A DNA stretch of 64,000 nt, from the NCBI GenBank assembly GCA_010909165.1, contig MU008201.1, positions 1-64,000 of the forward strand, written 5' to 3'. The notes beneath the pieces are model-generated. The model had not been told where the DNA came from. It ran no database searches and saw only the letters and a list, made by a program, of their open reading frames with translations. This DNA is from Anthoceros angustus (lineage: Eukaryota > Plantae > Anthocerotophyta). Shown piece by piece: positions 19,577 through 30,273 of the stretch (the first letter of the stretch is position 1; each line of letters begins with the position of its first letter). Made by a program: the position numbers and the translations under genes.

Positions 19577-20872
19577 ATGGCCCCTCCAGCTACGGACCTG
19601 AATTCGGCATCCAAGTTCAAAGTAGTGTTCGTAGGAGCTGGAGGTGTGAATTTCGGAAGTTTGGAAGGTCCATGGAACCATTCTGCGCGGCTGGAAAGGT
19701 GAGTTTCTTGTTCTGAGGCTGTTTCGAGGCTGCTCTGTTCTGCTCTGTTCCTTCTTGTCAAGCTCCCTGCTTGAACACGTTGTCGCTGCTTTTCTTACAG
19801 TATTCTCGGCAAGAGTCTGGAAGTGACAGCACTCGTCAGCCCCGCGGGTCGTGAAAAGGTCTTGGCTCTCAAACGATCGTCTCCCGCAGCTGCATCCTAT
19901 GCCAACACGAAGGAATACGACGATGTTTCAGACTTCCTCGCAGATCTGGCCTCCTCCCCCGACAGCAACTCCATCAAGCCCGACCTGGTGCTAGTCGGCG
20001 TGCCACCAGCATACCACGGCAACACCGCACCCGGAACCGACATCGAAGTCCAGCTTTCCAATTCCATCACCAACAACTTCGTCCTCTTCGTGGAGAAGCC
20101 GATGTCGAGCTCCCCGGTGCAGGACGTGAAGCTGGTAGGCAAGTACCTGGCGGAGCAACACCGCCTGGTGTCCGTGGGATACTTCATGCGCTACCTCAAG
20201 CTGGTGCAGACCATGAAGGACATCATCAGCAGCAACAAGCTGACGGTGATAGCCACAGTGGCCCGCTACACGTGCTGCTACGCCGCCATCGCCAAGAAGG
20301 AGTGGTGGATGAAGACCATCTCGTGCGGGCCGATTGTGGAGCAGGGCACGCACTTCTGCGACCTGTCTCGCTACTTCGGTGGCGACGTGGAGATCTCGAC
20401 TGTGCAGGCGCACGCGGTGGAGCACAACGAGGCGCCCGGGAAGCTCTCCAGCATCCCGATCGACGAGGCGAGCATCCCCGAGGAGGATCGCATCCCGCGG
20501 CTCACCTCGGCCATCTGGAAGTACAAGTCGGGCGCCGTGGGCTCCATCGTGCACGGCATCAACCTCCAGGGAGTCAAGTTCAACTGCGAGCTGGAAGTGC
20601 ATGCCGACGGATGGCTGCTGCACCTGGTGGATCCCTACCACTCGCCTCTGCTCAAAGTCCGGTCTCCTGCCAGCGACGAGCCCAAGGTCTTCACTGCCCC
20701 AGGCGATGATCCTTACCTGAATCAGATGCAGACTGTGGTTGCCGCTGCTCGGAATCCCGGCAATTCGACAGTCTTGTCCACCTGGGAGGACGCTGCCAAG
20801 ACCTACGAGCTCACCTGGGCCATCAGACATGCAAGCGAGGCTTCTTCTGGTAGAGGCAGCAAGTCTAATTAG
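19577..20872 (+). CDS. Gfo/Idh/MocA-type NAD(P)-binding oxidoreductase, fungal-like subfamily (397 aa, one intron)
   Basis: Exons 19577-19698 and 19801-20872 are in frame. Rossmann motif VVFVGAGGVNFGSLEGPWNHSARLE, LFVEKP, VSVGYFMRYL, GPIVEQGTHFCDLSRYFGG, ELEVHADG, DAAKTYELTWAIR. Confidence 0.9.
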
Positions 20873-21055
20873 GTAGACAGGGTACATGGGTGTCCATTTT
20901 GCTTTTGAATTAGGTCCGTTTTTTCCTTTTGCTGGATGAATACTATGCACCTATGTACATGGAATCGGGTCTCTCGTCCGGACACCCACATAAATACAAG
21001 AAATTTTCAGAGTTCACGATAGCATCTGCATAAGGCCAATCAAAGATTGAAAACG

Positions 21056-24000
21056 TCATTCATCGACGAAGTACTTGTAGCAAGCCCGGATGGACCTTGA
21101 GTCGGGTTCAAAAGAGGAACGGAAGGGGTTGTCAGCAGAAAGCGGAATTTGGAGTTGTCCGGAGGTTCGGTGATGGATAGGTGGGAGGGGAGAGGTTGGT
21201 GTATCTGTGTGAGCGGGTGATGGCTCTGTGGAGTCTGGACACACGAAATTTAGGCTCTCTAACCTAGAGAGCAGATTCTCTGTTCCGGTTTGAGGAGATG
21301 GAGAGGGGTCGAAAGATAGTGGGAGGCTGGTAAACAAGACACGCTGACCGTCTGATTCTTGGGTTTCTGATGATAGGTCATGGACACAGCTTGAACAAAG
21401 AGGGGATACAGATATTGGGAGGTCGCAAAGGAGATGGACTTCTGGATCATCCAAGCTTGCAACTTCAGAATCTGGAGTGGCTGCCACCCTTGTCACACCT
21501 GCTTCTTCGAAAGGGAAGTCGAAGTAGGCGCATCGTGTGCTCAGGTCGTCGGTCCAGAAGCTGTCTGACTCCTCCTGCCTTCGGTTTGTCCCGCTTTCAG
21601 AAACCTCAAGGGCAGGTGACGGAGAATCCTGCACAGTCAATGGCCGACTGCAAGCGGCCCACAAGCTTGAGGGTATGCAGTCAAAAGGAGAGGACAAGCT
21701 GGTGACACAGGGAGGGATTTGCCAAACTGCCCTAGCCACAACTTCAGCAAGGTCAGCCAAGACGCGATCTGCAATATCCTCGTACTCGTATTTGTCGTCG
21801 TTCAGTATACCATTGCTGTTGGTGTAGATCACAGCAGACAAGAAGAAGGACCGTTGTCTCTCAAGGTCAAATATGTACCTGCGTAGTGGTACAGATTGTT
21901 AGAGTGATACAGAATGTTTGGGCACTGCTGATCGCTGCATCACATGGAGATAAAAAGGAGACCATACGCGTTGTCAATTGTAAACCCGTATGCACGGCCG
22001 ATCTTGTTGTAGATACGTAAGGCTCCTTTTGCACGAACCCGTGAGAGGCCTGGTAAGAAAAACTGGAAACAGAACAAACAATGCGCAGATCCATGACTCA
22101 AGAGTTTCCACTGACTCTCCATGGACTGTCACAGACATCAACAAGAACCACTGAATTCGAAATCTATACCTTGCAATAATCGTCAGGGTAATCAGCCTTG
22201 TTATATTTCGGATTGCTGGAATCTGATGGGTACTGGCTCATGGCCTCCATCAGCATCATGCGTGTGCCGTCATTGAGCCTAAGTGGAGGTGAGTCTAACT
22301 TCCATCAGCCAAGAAATAGAGAGGTGTTATACACGGCTTCACTCCACGGCTTCTGAGCCTCCCACGAAAAGATAGGAAGCAGCAGGGTGCTCACCTCAAC
22401 ATCTCTCCGAACCAGCTTTACAAGCAGATTTTGCAAGTCTAGCAGACTCATGTAGTTCTTCTTTGAAAAGTCCATTGACTCTGGAACCTGGGAAAGCATG
22501 TCGGAAAACCGTGGCATGGTTAGCACATGCATTCAGTGCGTTATGGACTTGTTAAGCCCACAGAGTGATGCAGGCAGGAAATGAAGACATACCAGTTTCT
22601 CATCTTCCGTGACGTATGCAGTCCCCACATGCACTCCTGGCAAGGAGCTGTTTTCCGGAAGCACCAGGTTGCTCTTCTTGGGAGGCAGCGTAAGGTTAGT
22701 GGCCCCTAACTTCAAGCTCACCGGTTCGCAGTACTGGTTTTCTTCTGGTGTCAAGCACACAGAGAGTCGGTGTTGGAGCCTTGCACTCAACAAGCCAAGA
22801 CTCCACCTGCAGTGCACAGTGATTCATTTCGGCCAGAAATACTGGCACATCCAACTATTCCCGCCAGTGAGAGTGCCGAACACAATTTAACACTGCTCCT
22901 CACCAAGAAACATAACCGACAGTCTGTGACGAACCTACTCACATGGCTCTGTTCATGGAGTGGTGACCAACAAAGGTATACAGACGATTATATGCAGTGT
23001 TATCCGATACCTGGCAACATTTTCAACAGCACAATCACTATCAGAGGCATCGAAACACAGCTCCAGCTCAAGAAACAACCGAAACACACCTGCCACAACT
23101 TATACCAGGAAAAGCTTACGAATCTCATGTGCAATGGTGATGTTCTGCTGATCCAAGTTGGAAGGATCCACCTTCTCCTCTTCTGCTCCCTCAAAAAGAG
23201 GATAGAAGGAAATAGGAGTGGTGCAATTCACGTCTACAGCTGGAACCAAACCCTAAACCAATCAGCTCGGGAGCAGACACCAAACTCAATCATCAAGTTC
23301 CAGCTCCGAACCAAACACGGCCACACACCTAGCACCTCCTTCAGGTGTTTAACCTTCTGAACAGCAGCCACAGCGCCACAGAGCTTGATCGCACTGCACC
23401 AAACAGGCAGGCCTTGTTCACATGCATTGCCAAAATGAAATCCGACCAATTCCACCCACCACTCCTCTCCGCTACTCACCTGGCAGGATAGAAATACTCA
23501 TGATCCACACGGTAAGCGTGGCGCAGGAGCTGAGCAGGCCCAGCCCCGTCCCCCTCCACCACCTCCGACACTAGCACCTGGAACCTGAACGTGGTGGCCT
23601 TCTCCATGACACGCCCAAACATGGCAGGATGCGCATCCAGAACCCTCTCCAAGAAGCCGGGCCTCCCTTTCTCCCCCAACGCATGGCCCCCACCCCGCAT
23701 CTCCTCTTCCAGCAATTCTCTCCACTCCACCCTCCTGCCACAACCTCATCACTGCTCAAAATCCAACAAGAACATGCGCCCTGCCAGCACAGACCCCGAT
23801 GACATCTGCCAACACCCAGTGGCGAATCTCACTCCACTCCCCCGTCACTCAAAAACGAAGGTGAAATCCAGTCTGACTCGGAAAACAAGCACACCTTACC
23901 ACCTGTACGCGGTATCCACAGACCTCCGGGTCAGAGAAGCTGCCAACGCGATTCCTGTGGTCAAGCCCGTCAGAAGTAAAGTCCAATCTGTGCCCCTTGA

Positions 24001-24093
24001 AAAAATCAAGCCACGCCAGTCGCCAGTTACAGGCCGCATTAAATGGAGTCTGCAGTCAGTCACGCGACCAATTCGCACAGACGTCTGCCGCAT
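21056..24093 (-). CDS. Multi-exon serine hydrolase of the class A beta-lactamase / penicillin-binding fold, bacterial type, with N-terminal hydrophobic anchor and Ser/Pro/Asp-rich C-terminal extension
   Basis: About 10 GT-AG exons give RFQVLVSEV...YRVDHEYFYPAS|AIKLCGAVAAVQKV, IAHEIRKLFL|VSDNTAYNRLYTFVG, ESMDFSKKNYMSLLDLQNLL, MSQYPSDSSNPKYNKADYPDDYCK|FFLPG, LRIYNKIGRAYGFTIDNA|YIFDLERQRSFFLSAVIYTNSNGILNDDKYEYEDI. One junction (~22290) needs a 1-nt correction. Exon 1 (24093-23903) is inferred from phase compatibility. Confidence 0.85.
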
Positions 24094-24349
24094 TCATGTC
24101 GGAAGTCCAGTCGCCTCTGAACACAAGCTCTTGAATTCCTTCCCAGGCCCACCCACAATATTCTCCTATTTATCATTAATTGCTATCATCATGGGCTTAA
24201 TTCAATCCATGTGTCCATTCGAAGACTCAATCACAAAAGGTACAAAGTAAGAATATATCCCTCACTAGATCAATTAAAAATATATAAAAATTATACAAAG
24301 AAGTATATAATTTGAATATATCTAGTTTAAAATTATTTGAAAATAAATA

Positions 24350-24386
24350 TAATATATTATATTATATTATATTATATTATATTATA
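24350..24386. repeat. (ATATT)n microsatellite
   Basis: Directly visible. Confidence 0.85.
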
Positions 24387-25908
24387 CCAAACAATAACAT
24401 CTAGAGAGAAAAAGACATTCTTCGTTTTTTCTGTCCCCGCTTGAGGAATGACATGATAGCCGGAGTTCATGGGAACTCCATAGTAAAGTAATGAGGGTTT
24501 CTTCCTTTTTTGTCCTCCTTTTGGTCGGATACTACTCGGATCGTGGTAGCGATTCTTCCTTTTTTGTTCTCCCTTGAGGAGTAACATGGAGTAACATGGC
24601 TAAGCAACCTTCTCGCGGGATCACTATTGGGATGGTGGTAGCATGTTCGAATCTCACAGCCCACTGCGTTCGGGTGGAAAGATGGTTCCCTGCATTTTTG
24701 TCCTTCTTTGAGAAGTGACATAGTAATCAGGAGTTCATTGGAACTCCGTAGTTAAGCAGCCTTATGATCAGCTCTCTATTGAAATGAGGAACCACCTACT
24801 ACCGATTACTCCTTCCTAGCACTTGGTGACTACTGCGATGGGGTACCACCCATCGCCAAGTAGGTATTCTGGTCTACCTATTCTCCCTTGGTGATTATTG
24901 GGATGGGATACCACCCATCGCCTATTACTCCTTGCTGTTGGAATCATCCCGATGGATACACAACCCATCCGGTACACAACCCATCACCTCTTATACCCGG
25001 CCCTTGGTGGCATGCCTGTTCTAAGCCCTTCGAGATGCCTGATATATGATCTGAGTTGTAATGTCCTTTGGAGTGAAGCCCTTCGAGCTGCGTGATATAT
25101 GATTTTCGTTGTAAGGTCCTTTGGAGTCTCATAAATTATGTGGAATATAAATACTTGATCAATTTCACAGAAAAAGATGTCATAAATTATATGGAATGTA
25201 AATACTGGATCAATTATCTAGACAGTAACTATGATATATAATATTTATAATATATCTATATACCTATATAATAACCAACCGAAGAATCTTTTGGTTAGAA
25301 GAGTATAAGGAGTCGAGGAAGGCATCTGCGTCCGTTTTCGGGCTTTGGTTTTTCCATCGCGCCTGCCCCTCCCCTCGTGCGGATCTTGGGCGCTGTAAAT
25401 GTTTAGGAGTCGAGGACTCTTGGAGTAGGACGTTGAATTCCAATATATTCACATACATATAATGTTCTGTATTCACATACATATGTACCTAGTTAAAATT
25501 CCATGTCGTTGGTTCAACACGGTTGCCCATGTCAGAGCCCGCGACCCCATGAGTCACTGGTCAGTGGCTGTGTATCAATGGTGGCCCCATCCACGATCGG
25601 CTATTTGCTGACTTGGTCTGCGTCATCAAGCCAGCGCCTTCTTGTCCGACTCAAATGTAACCGGCTTGGAGGCTTGTGCCGGGGCAGCCGGCCGCATTGC
25701 GAGCGTCAGCTTCTACATGTTTGGCTTTGCACGTGTGCGGATTGGCTCGCGGCGGCATCCGCGCCGGGTTGGCGGATTGGTGTTTTAGAATCCGGAGCGG
25801 AGGAAGGGAAAATTTTGGTGCGCAGGCGTGCTGTGCAGGTGGTAGATCTTGAGCTGGAATTGGGAGCTGTATGTATCGTGCGTAGGAGGATTTGAAGCGG
25901 CGAGGAAG

Positions 25909-28761: not shown

Positions 28762-30273
28762 TCATCTGAATCGGGCCCTATCGTGCGGCGCCGAGTAATC
28801 GAAAGGAAACCCAAGAGGGATTATGCCATGAGGGTTGATAGTGGGGTGACTGCCATAATAGTGCCTCTTGATGTGATCCATTTTCACAGTGTCAGCGACG
28901 CCATTGGTTTGGTAGATATCTCTCGTGTAGTTGATCAAATTGGGGTACTCTCTGATGAAATGCTTGTTGCATTTGAAGTGCACAACGTAGACCTGCAAAA
29001 CAGCAGTTGGCTCTCTTATTTAATCTCATGTTTCAACACACACACCCGCTTTGCTAATGTCATGTTTCAAGAAGAGAGCGAACCTCATCAAACCGGATCA
29101 GGGTGACAAATAAACGGATGTCTGCCTCTGTCAACGTGTTGCCTACCAGGTACCTCTGTGTCCCCAAAATACCTTCGACTCTTTCCAGTGCATTGAACAC
29201 ATCATGGAAAGCCTGGATGCAGTGCAAAGCAAGAATCAGTCCTTTGACCTAAACCACGAACTGACAGAGCTCCCCAGCAGGTCAGGAAAGGACAGGATGG
29301 AAGCAACACCAACCTCTTCATAAGGCTTCTGCTTAGTTGCAAAGCCTGCCCGGTACACACCATTGTTAATGGACGGGTAAACCCACTCATTCACCTCGTC
29401 AATCTCCTTCCTCAGTGGCTCCGGGTACAGATCCAGCGCTGGGTTCTTGGCTATGTGGTTGAACTCGGAATTGAACATGCGCACGATCTCCGAGCTCTCG
29501 TTGTTGACGATGGTGTGCTTCTCCTTGTCCCACAGGACCTGAACAGGCATGCATGACGCACAAGAGAGACCTCAGCTACAAGCAGGAGCGGAAACCGATC
29601 TGCAATTCTGGGACATATGTCGCTCAACACTTACGGGTACAGTGTATCTGCCATTGTACTTAGGATCAGCTCTGTCATACAGGTCCCGAATGCTTTTGGA
29701 CCCAAAAAGAGGATCCCTGTGGGCATCTGGCTCCTCGGCTCCAGGATGCGGGAAGACCCACCCGAAGTGCTCGTCATTCTCCTTCGTCCTCTCCCATTTC
29801 GCATTGGTGGCCTGCGCAGAGACCAGGTCCATCCAGTACCATCCCAGCTGACAAAAAAGAGCCCACTACATTGAGAGCGAGGTCCAGCAGCTTACAGTCA
29901 GCCCGATGGCGTGCTCCAAACCCTTGAGCTTGATGGCAGCGTAGCATCGAGACGCCCAGGGGCAGGCATACGAGATGTAGAGATGGTACCGGCCAGCTAC
30001 AGGGGGAAACTCAGCTCCCTCCTTGCTGGAGATCCAGTTGCGGAAAACCGAGGCCGGCCTCTTGAACTCCCCATCCTTGAGATCCGACAGAGTGGTTTTT
30101 CCTGGGGCCATCTGGGCGGACACGACGCACACACCCCGGCTTTTGCTGCAGCTCCTCACTTTAAGTTCAGGAAGGCCAACTCCAACAAATCTCTGCAGCC
30201 CAGTTCTCAGTCCAACCAACCCAGCTCTGTCCACTCTCAGAAGAGCAACAGGCGGCGCTGCCAGACTCAACAT
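28762..30273 (-). CDS. Glutathionyl-hydroquinone reductase (Xi/omega-like GST, YqjG/ECM4 family) with transit peptide
   Basis: [39 protein letters not shown]|[67 protein letters not shown]. Confidence 0.92.

Follow-up and report, generated by a model that had tools for sequence, protein, structure and literature searches.

The minus strand of the analysed stretch of Anthoceros angustus DNA (64,000 nucleotides, hereafter the window) carries a real, spliced and expressed nuclear plant gene. Its product is, on balance, probably a vertically inherited, bacterial-derived hydrolase of the PF13354 family, predicted to be cytosolic and to serve as a penicillin-binding-type peptidase or amidase on peptidoglycan-derived peptides. 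The joined exons encode SxxK, SDN and KxG motifs in the correct order within a single open frame of 613 amino acids with one terminal stop, bearing out the original prediction of a spliced gene with these three motifs. The same prediction of about ten exons holds for the multi-exon structure and fails for the count: there are nine coding exons, because the first exon then proposed is unsupported. Each of the eight introns is of the GT..AG type and 86-136 nt long, and the first of them interrupts the codon of the catalytic Ser74 (AG/T; a slash within nucleotide letters marks an exon border). The features of the gene are:

23700..21056, minus strand: coding sequence, 9 exons, 613 codons plus stop; ATG 23700-23698, stop 21058-21056
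23701..24053, minus strand: 5' leader; two related species transcribe it without splicing
23896..24093, minus strand: upstream open reading frame (exon 1 of the original prediction), 65 codons, within the leader and outside the protein
23480..23700, minus strand: exon 1, 221 nt; ends with YFYPA and the first two bases of the Ser74 codon
23481..23384, minus strand: S-A-I-K motif, spanning exons 1 and 2
23329..23393, minus strand: exon 2, 65 nt; finishes Ser74 and holds Lys77 of SxxK
23106..23239, minus strand: exon 3, 134 nt; from translation, RNA joints and intron comparison
22943..23010, minus strand: exon 4, 68 nt; Ser142-Asp-Asn144 (SDN) at 23007-22999
22593..22806, minus strand: exon 5, 214 nt; His175-Arg-Leu177 (HRL) at 22772-22764, followed by Glu184-Glu185-Asn186; the exon also contains the start of a family-specific beta-rich insert
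22395..22487, minus strand: exon 6, 93 nt; from translation, RNA joints and intron comparison
22170..22298, minus strand: exon 7, 129 nt; acceptor ..gaag/ttag..
21968..22062, minus strand: exon 8, 95 nt; Lys328-Ile-Gly330 (KIG) at 22005-21997; donor ..aacgc/gtatgg
21056..21878, minus strand: exon 9; end of the catalytic domain, WQIPP..DCIPSSLW segment, disordered tail, C-terminal motif and stop
21826-21782, minus strand: end of the catalytic domain, YTNSNGILNDDKYEY, in exon 9
21724-21659, minus strand: WQIPP..DCIPSSLW segment, in exon 9
21082-21059, minus strand: CYKYFVDE C-terminal motif, in exon 9, directly before the stop

Transcript evidence comes from RNA contigs of a run that is 100% identical to the window and derives from the same sample as the DNA (X1), and from runs of two related species (X2 and X16). 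All eight joints, among them 23480 to 23393 and 22298 to 22395, occur at exactly the model coordinates in contigs of X1, X2 and X16, so that every predicted junction is confirmed in the window's species and in two relatives. The acceptor of exon 7 lies 4 nt upstream of a more obvious ttag/ site and is the sole acceptor that preserves the frame: use of ttag/act at 22294 breaks the frame, whereas 22298 fits and agrees with the RNA joint. Similarly, a donor tatg/gtct at 21963 breaks the frame, whereas 21968 fits and agrees with the RNA joint. In the contigs of the relatives, exon 9 shows about twice the divergence of the catalytic exons; its indels at 21351-21356 sum to 9 nt and the frame is therefore kept in these species.

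At the 5' end, the contigs of the relatives are colinear with the genome (23480-24053 in X2 and 23480-24007 in X16), and the first exon of the original prediction, placed at 24093-23900/23903, thus falls in an unspliced leader in both relatives. Several observations led us to reject it: neither X2 nor X16 shows a splice at 23900/23734; both relatives have two 1-nt insertions (23935 and 23940) inside it; an in-frame TGA TGA (23751-23746) shuts the frame ahead of the ATG at 23700; and it is absent from the homologues, which begin at the downstream methionine, the complete ones starting ~3-30 residues from the equivalent position. Among the runs searched for the window's species, 23740-24095 is covered by a DNA run and by no RNA; because the RNA run of this species misses the 5' end, the start codon is inferred. 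A search of the window for an upstream exon matching the free end of the X2 contig found none.

Sequence comparisons place residues 1 to ~395 in the PF13354 'class A beta-lactamase-related serine hydrolase' subfamily. Local alignments give 45-50% identity over ~380 amino acids to bacterial PF13354 proteins from Planctomycetota, Verrucomicrobiota and Acidobacteriota, and 48-60% identity to plant orthologues, the nearest named ones overall reaching 48-63%; a representative search queried with coding exon 1 (84 aa) also returned relatives, the best of them at 62% identity. Family searches and fold prediction were carried out with two proxies, P0012 (60% identical) and P0037, in place of the window protein. 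Orthologues and relatives score above the PF13354 cut-off of 22 bits (P0012 36, P0010 40.8, P0016 43.7 and P0018 63.2), and the same domain is precomputed for nearly all database matches. An exon-by-exon Pfam scan of the window returned PF13354 for the SDN exon only (E 0.024), single-exon matches being weak because the exons are too short. The window protein itself is assigned to the family because it is 60% identical to P0012 and 45-50% identical to bacterial members; it also retains all 69 of the family columns that are conserved at 90% or more, far beyond chance.

The most conserved blocks of the family are YFYPAS, NKxGxAYGF and YTNxNGxLNDDxYEY, the very motifs by which the original prediction had pointed to these serine hydrolases. 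At E < 1e-40 the bacterial family exceeds 1,300 database proteins, typically lipoproteins or exported proteins of ~400 amino acids from Planctomycetota, Verrucomicrobiota, Acidobacteriota, Bacteroidota and Myxococcota. The plant protein resembles them over the whole catalytic domain, including the same inserts and the motifs EYFYPAS.IK, LVSDN, HRL, SxNPxY, PDDYxKFLLPG, NKxGxAYGF and YTNxNGxLNDDxYEY; it differs in having eight introns, no signal or lipoprotein leader and a ~220-aa C-terminal extension with DCIPSSLW and CYKYFVDE. A search of literature and databases found no characterised member of either the bacterial family or the plant orthogroup, and a full-text literature search found no paper on its plant members. 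Given the size of this family, for which we found no characterised member, any assay result would annotate many genomes.

The catalytic domain is predicted to adopt the class A beta-lactamase/PBP-A fold. An AlphaFold2 model of residues 1-425 of the proxy P0012 reached a pLDDT of 91.3 and a pTM of 0.91, and Foldseek matched it to class A beta-lactamases at E ~1e-10 with probability 1.00, yielding the fold that had been anticipated. In VIA-align comparisons (rmsd 2.7-3.2 over ~250 residues) the best structural match is the DD-peptidase PBP-A (2J7V; Z 23.2, 252 residues, rmsd 2.9), followed by LRA-5 at Z 23.1. At the sequence level, phmmer of P0012 against PDB sequences returned no match at E up to 1, and a profile search against the PDB gave marginal matches only. 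PBP-A (Tll2115 of Thermosynechococcus elongatus) shares with the plant protein the fold, SxxK, SDN and a leucine at the position equivalent to Glu166; it is unlike it in belonging to a different sequence family (~16% identity, profile E 0.09), in being exported, in having KTG, and in lacking both the tail and the ~120 extra residues. Likewise, the metagenomic class A 'precursor' LRA-5 (8EO5), which has Val166, shares the fold and a hydrophobic residue at 166, but is a bacterial exported protein of 290 amino acids with ~18% identity and none of the family inserts. The Ambler class A enzymes (CTX-M, TEM, PenP, BlaC) agree in fold (Z 22-23) and in the order of SxxK and SDN, whereas the plant protein lacks Glu166, has KIG, shows 14-20% identity to them and contains ~120 extra residues.

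Glu166, on the omega loop, is the deacylating base of true class A beta-lactamases. In weak profile alignments (E 0.03-0.13; no superposition), a leucine conserved in 95% of the family, Leu177 in the window protein, aligns to Leu158 of PBP-A and Val166 of LRA-5. A conserved Glu185-Asn186 pair lies 8-9 residues beyond Leu177, and the acidic Glu185 could act as a base. The third motif is Lys328-Ile-Gly330 in place of the class A form K[ST]G (Lys234-Thr/Ser235-Gly236); across the family alignment its K and G are invariant and its middle residue is not conserved, being I, V, A, G, T or C in the individual sequences inspected. Such a variable middle position is unusual for enzymes that bind the carboxylate of D-Ala-D-Ala or of beta-lactams. 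NCBIfam class A models score P0037 at 16.7 bits against a cut-off of 200, and P0012 at 20.9 bits on blaCESS against 525. The identification as a class A beta-lactamase therefore does not hold, given the leucine at the Glu166 position, the KIG motif and NCBIfam scores far under the cut-offs. PBP-A lacks the omega-loop glutamate and acts as a DD-peptidase (PMC11189452), and wild-type LRA-5 confers no resistance (PMC12777564). We propose that catalysis would proceed through an acyl-enzyme on Ser74, aided by Lys77, Ser142/Asn144 and Lys328, with Leu177 taking the place of the deacylating Glu166, much as Leu158 does in PBP-A and Val166 in LRA-5, an inactive precursor. The hydrophobic residue at this position leads one to expect a penicillin-binding-type peptidase or amidase, not an efficient beta-lactamase, and the former is the most likely role of the protein.

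In phylogenetic analysis the eukaryotic proteins form one clade (support 100/99), the inner order of which matches the species phylogeny, nested among PVC/Acidobacteriota sequences. The clade is represented in Cymbomonas, Mesostigma, Chlorokybus, Klebsormidium, Zygnematophyceae, a liverwort, a moss and lycophytes. Named orthologues, annotated only as hypothetical or by domain, include those of Ceratodon purpureus (M758_8G077600), Calypogeia fissa, Selaginella moellendorffii (LOC112345750) and Diphasiastrum complanatum (O6H91_18G075200) among land plants, and of Klebsormidium nitens (KFL_000500260), Chlorokybus, Mesostigma, Spirogloea, Mesotaenium and Cymbomonas among algae. All eight introns match those of Ceratodon and Klebsormidium (the two genes checked) in both position and phase, and exon 2 has the same length in all three, which agrees with the intron-rich nuclear gene originally described. 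A cyanobacterial (endosymbiotic) origin was considered and rejected: the 80 nearest genome loci include no cyanobacterial sequence, and the clade sits amid PVC/Acidobacteriota proteins.

Together these comparisons show an ancient single bacterial origin followed by vertical inheritance in green plants. One bacterial ancestor gene, of a type that is widespread today among Planctomycetota, Verrucomicrobiota and Acidobacteriota, entered the green lineage before the chlorophyte/streptophyte split; introns were gained before Klebsormidium diverged, with vertical inheritance afterwards. Hence the notion of an acquired and domesticated enzyme survives in its bacterial origin, on the evidence of the tree, and not as a recent or lineage-specific gain, the orthogroup being old and its introns conserved. 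Of the well-characterised, vertically inherited orthogroup that the original prediction named as removing the novelty, the vertical inheritance is borne out. Among the matches listed (the best 120) in three database searches, no seed-plant protein appeared near the top, as expected of a gene that is not a standard seed-plant one, and no match was named as Physcomitrium patens or Marchantia polymorpha. Algae, bryophytes and lycophytes have retained the gene, and seed plants appear to have lost it. It offers a clean case of bacterial gene entry into the green lineage before the chlorophyte/streptophyte split with full 'eukaryotisation', namely the gain of eight introns, the loss of the export signal and the gain of a disordered tail with a terminal motif.

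The termini of the protein bear on its location. All 13 complete eukaryotic N-termini are short and non-hydrophobic, with 22-52 residues before the first conserved motif, and none of the 13 has a signal or transit peptide; a hydrophobic leader is seen in 78% of the bacterial N-termini. The eukaryotic clade appears to have lost the bacterial signal or lipoprotein peptide, and since neither a signal nor a transit peptide is present, the catalytic domain is predicted to be cytosolic. The tail encoded by exon 9 is rich in Ser, Pro and Asp, disordered and ~190 amino acids long; land-plant members share its architecture and the C-terminal motif, while its length and sequence otherwise vary freely. 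In a full-length AlphaFold2 model of P0012 residues 407-493 have pLDDT values under 50, and the final four residues rise only marginally. A disordered tail with the conserved end CYKYF[VL]DE extends from Zygnematophyceae-like members to land plants, and early-diverging algal members lack the YFVDE terminus; the tail was probably gained in the common ancestor of Zygnematophyceae and land plants. The CYKYF[VL]DE peptide probably serves in docking or targeting. In the algal member P0016 the C-terminus is a hydrophobic helix resembling a tail anchor.

The gene neighborhoods of the bacterial relatives offer contextual information on the substrate. In 18 of 80 bacterial loci, drawn from three phyla, a lysA gene (above the TIGR01048 cut-off) lies directly upstream, and its stop often overlaps the start of the family gene. 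AmpH-like PF00144 genes and a PF00144-NamZ fusion also adjoin family genes, and one bacterial member is fused to NodB; other fusions are with a solute symporter and with CBM20. About a quarter of the bacterial loci have peptidoglycan- or DAP-related neighbors. At loci lacking lysA the neighbors are unrelated (fucosidase, DUF1501, IlvD, MerC), so that genomic context gives a partial signal. Peptidoglycan-derived peptides containing D-Ala or meso-DAP would be the most likely substrate class; proposed only from the neighborhoods and fusions of the bacterial relatives, this is the weakest step of the reading that we favor. Given that the holders of the gene belong to lineages reported to build plastid peptidoglycan still and that the protein has a penicillin-recognising fold, it is a candidate for plastid-wall turnover or muropeptide handling.

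A more specific alternative, which we regard as unlikely, is that the protein is a DD-carboxypeptidase or endopeptidase of plastid peptidoglycan, which reaches the envelope by a non-canonical route, for example via the C-terminal motif, and remodels the wall during division. Its holders (prasinophyte and streptophyte algae, bryophytes and lycophytes) are lineages reported to keep plastid peptidoglycan synthesis, the distribution of which across plant lineages is summarised in PMC9434261, and the matches listed include no seed plant. PBP-A, the nearest relative by structure, is a DD-peptidase from a cyanobacterium; the lysA, AmpH-like and NamZ genes beside the bacterial relatives and the anchor-like helix of P0016 also fit such a role. 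However, none of the 13 complete eukaryotic proteins has a transit or signal peptide, the gene did not come from a cyanobacterial donor, and such a gene goes unmentioned in the plastid-peptidoglycan literature searched. Moreover, most work on plastid peptidoglycan concerns the moss P. patens (PMC9434261), and neither this species nor M. polymorpha is named among the matches listed. An improbable elaboration is that walled-plastid plants possess a second penicillin-recognising enzyme, a cytosol-facing DD-peptidase of planctomycete/verrucomicrobial ancestry that CYKYFVDE recruits to the plastid envelope or division site and that acts there on peptidoglycan or fragments of it. If so, seed plants would have lost it in step with the reduction of their plastid peptidoglycan, and part of the effect of beta-lactams on plastid division might run through this enzyme and not through PBP1A alone.

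Somewhat less probable than a plastid-wall enzyme is a hydrolase that reuses the fold, with its three motifs performing general acyl-serine chemistry, on a small-molecule ester or amide, a cytosolic peptide or some other compound that has nothing to do with peptidoglycan or beta-lactams, in which case the family would be one more conserved orphan hydrolase. The protein has 14-20% identity to any solved or characterised enzyme, no PDB match by phmmer, ~120 extra residues with invariant motifs of its own (SxNPxY, PDDYxKFLLPG and YTNxNGxLNDDxYEY) and a variable KxG middle residue; many bacterial loci have unrelated neighbors, symporter and CBM20 fusions occur, and the protein is predicted to reside in the cytosol, which is not known to contain peptidoglycan. 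Against this, the translational coupling to lysA in three phyla and the AmpH-like, NamZ and NodB associations indicate cell-wall peptide metabolism, as in the peptidoglycan-peptide hydrolase that we prefer.

It is very doubtful that the protein is a true beta-lactamase that shields the plant, and its peptidoglycan-dependent plastid division, from microbial beta-lactams. The class A fold with SxxK and SDN, a conserved acidic residue near the omega-loop region and the sensitivity of plastid division in non-seed plants to antibiotics against peptidoglycan synthesis (PMC9434261) are compatible with such a function, but Leu occupies the aligned Glu166 position, the natural hydrophobic-166 proteins PBP-A and LRA-5 are not effective beta-lactamases, KIG replaces K[ST]G, and NCBIfam class A scores are 17-21 bits against cut-offs of at least 200. 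Finally, an artefact in the form of bacterial contamination or a decaying pseudogene, for which the bacterial affinity of the protein and nothing more would speak, is refuted by the eight spliceosomal introns common to moss and alga, the spliced RNA in three species, the intact frame with all conserved residues kept, and a GC content that resembles that of the surrounding DNA.

The window carries an expressed gene on its minus strand. Between 24400 and 20800, exons joined at GT..AG sites give a single open frame of 613 codons, in which the SxxK, SDN and KxG motifs of the original prediction are all found in the correct order. As had also been noticed there, the gene is invisible in single ORFs, the longest in the region being the 261-aa last exon. 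Contigs from three RNA runs, X1 (same sample as the genome) and X2 and X16 (two related species), were placed on 20600-24500, and all 8 joints of the model occur at its exact coordinates in contigs of X1, X2 and X16; the ends read CT..AC in plus-strand orientation and hence GT..AG on the gene strand. Of the words sampled from the gene stretch, X1 contains 60%, about the share of the exons. The introns are 86-136 nt long and the GC content is about 50%, compatible with the short introns and roughly 50% GC of hornwort genomes.

Exons (GT..AG joining and RNA joints) and catalytic motifs of the hydrolase gene
23700-23480, minus strand, exon 1, 221 nt
23393-23329, minus strand, exon 2, 65 nt
23239-23106, minus strand, exon 3, 134 nt
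23010-22943, minus strand, exon 4, 68 nt
22806-22593, minus strand, exon 5, 214 nt
22487-22395, minus strand, exon 6, 93 nt
22298-22170, minus strand, exon 7, 129 nt
22062-21968, minus strand, exon 8, 95 nt
21878-21056, minus strand, exon 9, the last exon
23481..23384, minus strand, SxxK (Ser74-Ala-Ile-Lys77), serine codon AG/T interrupted by intron 1
23007-22999, minus strand, SDN (Ser142-Asp-Asn144), from the spliced translation
22005-21997, minus strand, KxG (Lys328-Ile-Gly330), from the spliced translation

The catalytic exons of X2 and X16 differ from the window by 2-8% substitutions with zero gaps. Their tail exon shows about 9.5% substitutions, and its listed indels, at 21351-21356, total 9 nt, so that the reading frame is preserved. 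Given this greater divergence of the tail, the catalytic part looks to be under the stronger constraint.

The start of the gene differs from that originally proposed, which placed a first coding exon at 24093-23900. X2 and X16 contigs follow the genome unspliced from 23480 as far as 24053 and 24007, respectively, across the supposed intron, and within the proposed exon each has two single-nucleotide insertions, at 23935 and 23940. Two in-frame TGA codons (23751-23746) lie ahead of the ATG at 23700. Complete eukaryotic homologues begin 22-52 residues ahead of the first conserved motif, as does the window protein from Met 23700, and the annotated first coding exon of the moss Ceratodon measures 212 nt against 221 nt in the window. 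Together these observations argue against 24093-23900 as a coding exon. As X1 does not reach the 5' end of the gene, and 23740-24095 is present only in a DNA run, the start codon at 23700 is a predicted one. The ORF at 24093 is most plausibly an upstream ORF within a long leader; it spans 65 codons (23896-24093, minus strand), and a second upstream ORF of 13 codons starts at 24096. Should transcription in the window's species begin upstream of both, the two might act in translational control.

Relatives were found by a search with the first coding exon, and family and fold are established through them rather than on the window protein. Its identity is 60% over 398 aa to the transcript-derived protein P0012, 48% over the full length including the tail to Ceratodon purpureus P0037, and 45-50% over about 380 aa to bacterial proteins of about 400 aa, which NCBI labels 'serine hydrolase' or 'class A beta-lactamase-related serine hydrolase'. 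The relatives pass Pfam PF13354, and the window protein retains all 69 columns conserved at >=90% in an alignment of 82 family members. AF2 modelled residues 1-425 of P0012 with high confidence (pLDDT 91.3, pTM 0.91), and for this proxy the predicted beta-lactamase-type fold is borne out, with Foldseek matching class A beta-lactamases at E about 1e-10 and 14-17% identity. VIA-align matches the model to PBP-A, a cyanobacterial DD-peptidase (2j7v; Z 23.2), and to LRA-5, a class A precursor, and many class A enzymes (Z 22.6-23.2), with about 250 residues aligned at rmsd 2.7-3.2. Sequence alone barely detects this kinship: phmmer returned zero matches for P0012 against PDB sequences, and a profile search against structures gave E 0.016-0.09. 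Unlike the class A enzymes, the family has invariant motifs of its own and is about 120 residues longer, mostly through a beta-rich insert past the SDN helix region.

In terms of activity, the window protein is probably not a beta-lactamase, and its sequence features would better suit a penicillin-binding-type acyl-serine peptidase. NCBIfam class A models score family proxies at 17-21 bits against cut-offs of at least 200. At position 166, where true class A beta-lactamases have the deacylating glutamate, weak profile alignments place a 95%-conserved leucine of the family (His-Arg-Leu; Leu177 in the window) against Leu158 of PBP-A and Val166 of LRA-5. PBP-A is a DD-peptidase without the class A omega-loop glutamate (PMC11189452), and wild-type LRA-5 conferred no resistance in E. 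coli (PMC12777564). Likewise, the middle residue of KxG is isoleucine in the window protein and variable across the family, as opposed to threonine or serine in class A. A Glu-Glu-Asn triplet (22737-22745, minus strand) places Glu185-Asn186 8-9 residues past the leucine aligned to position 166; family members have E/D at the former position in 85% and Asn at the latter in 73%, and the two could form a displaced catalytic pair.

Among eukaryotes, the gene is held by the algae Cymbomonas (a prasinophyte), Mesostigma, Chlorokybus, Klebsormidium, Spirogloea and Mesotaenium, and by the land plants Calypogeia (liverwort), Ceratodon (moss), Selaginella and Diphasiastrum (lycophytes). No seed plants, core chlorophytes, fungi or other eukaryotes appeared near the top of three homology searches, and neither P. 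patens nor M. polymorpha was among the best 120 matches listed by them. All eukaryotic sequences form a single clade in a quick tree of 106 rows (SH-aLRT 99) and a careful one of 61 rows (UFBoot/SH-aLRT 100/99). Its inner order is that of the species phylogeny: Cymbomonas, then Mesostigma with Chlorokybus (99/90), Klebsormidium, and Zygnematophyceae with land plants (96/87). The clade sits among Planctomycetota, Verrucomicrobiota, Acidobacteriota and Myxococcota with no resolved sister in the trees, and cyanobacteria are absent from the 80 nearest bacterial loci. When annotated Ceratodon and Klebsormidium proteins were aligned back to their own loci, all 8 window introns proved identical in column and phase in both. 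The inner exons are 65, 134, 68, 214, 93, 129 and 95 nt in the window and Ceratodon, and 65, 134, 68, 220, 96, 129 and 95 nt in Klebsormidium, which has one additional intron. The single clade and shared introns thus show one ancient transfer, with introns gained before Klebsormidium diverged and vertical inheritance thereafter. The original prediction held that a well-characterised, vertically inherited orthogroup would remove the gene's novelty; vertically inherited it is, and well characterised it is not. Full-text literature searches found no published study of the plant orthogroup, and its database entries bear automatic names only; the gene belongs to an already catalogued, uncharacterised orthogroup of a known Pfam family. 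P0021 and P0011 (eukprot SM000206S06293 and SM000222S06962, which we take to be Spirogloea) are two paralogues; the pair includes a 703-aa gene model with extra segments breaking the catalytic-domain alignment, probably unspliced introns left in the annotation.

Bacterial members have hydrophobic leaders, many with a lipobox-like Cys, a strongly hydrophobic window in 78%, and a median of 54 residues ahead of the first motif. None of 13 complete eukaryotic N-termini (median 32 residues) has a hydrophobic leader or a visible transit peptide. Land-plant and Zygnematophyceae-like members have three elements past the catalytic domain.

Tail elements
WQIPP..DC[IV]PSSLW segment
variable Ser/Pro/Asp-rich linker, about 190 aa in the window protein
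21059-21082, minus strand, terminal C-Y-K-Y-F-[VL]-D-E peptide, also in relatives P0037, P0039, P0043, P0045, P0046 and P0050

The AF2 model of full-length P0012 has a disordered tail. The terminal peptide that follows this freely evolving linker is nevertheless conserved, its range extending from Zygnematophyceae-like sequences to mosses, liverworts and lycophytes. To our knowledge no targeting signal fits it (PTS1, K/HDEL and the EEVD TPR motif do not). We read the peptide as a candidate short linear docking or targeting motif, and infer that the tail would be a docking device on a probably cytosolic catalytic domain. P0016, a 448-aa algal member of the eukaryotic clade, has a hydrophobic C-terminus of about 20 residues in place of the YFVDE tail and may be a tail-anchored version.

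Clustering of ORFs across the 80 bacterial loci identified the diaminopimelate decarboxylase gene lysA as the commonest conserved neighbour (361-441 bits on TIGR01048; cut-off 298). In 18 of the 80 loci, belonging to Planctomycetota, Acidobacteriota and a gammaproteobacterium, lysA is the gene immediately upstream, in the same orientation, and its stop codon often overlaps the start of the hydrolase gene. Further genes that recur nearby encode a Kbl/BioF-type PLP enzyme, a 2,4-diaminopentanoate-dehydrogenase-like protein and AmpH-like PF00144 proteins, and one planctomycete clade has PF00144 fused to NamZ, an exo-N-acetylmuramidase; elsewhere the family itself is fused to NodB or a sodium:solute symporter. 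Neighbours at other loci are unrelated in function. This context suggests a role in the metabolism of cell-wall peptides or DAP, for which the lysA-hydrolase pair looks like an uncharacterised cassette. The pair, often translationally coupled, was seen at L006, L008, L010-L012, L014, L018, L022-L025, L029, L030, L032, L034, L040 and L057, some with Ord-like and Kbl/BioF-like genes ahead or the PF00144-NamZ fusion after. By analogy, the substrate of the plant protein would be related to peptidoglycan peptides. A role in plastid peptidoglycan, as originally suggested, would be a speculative reading, attractive because of the phyletic pattern of the holders.

The gene has a convergent neighbour.

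19823-20869, plus strand, intron-less ORF of 349 codons, oxidoreductase with PF08635 (E 1e-67) and GFO_IDH_MocA domains

An X1 contig continues from the oxidoreductase gene's end into the hydrolase gene's 3' exons, placing the convergent 3' ends of the two within about 200 nt. For the oxidoreductase family, transfer from a fungus into the hornwort Anthoceros angustus has been published (PMC7027989), in a paper whose text and supplements mention no lactamase-like gene. An (ATAAT)n microsatellite (24338-24397) lies immediately upstream of the hydrolase gene, and an ORF fragment at 28762-28998 (minus strand) resembles a glutathione-transferase-like exon.
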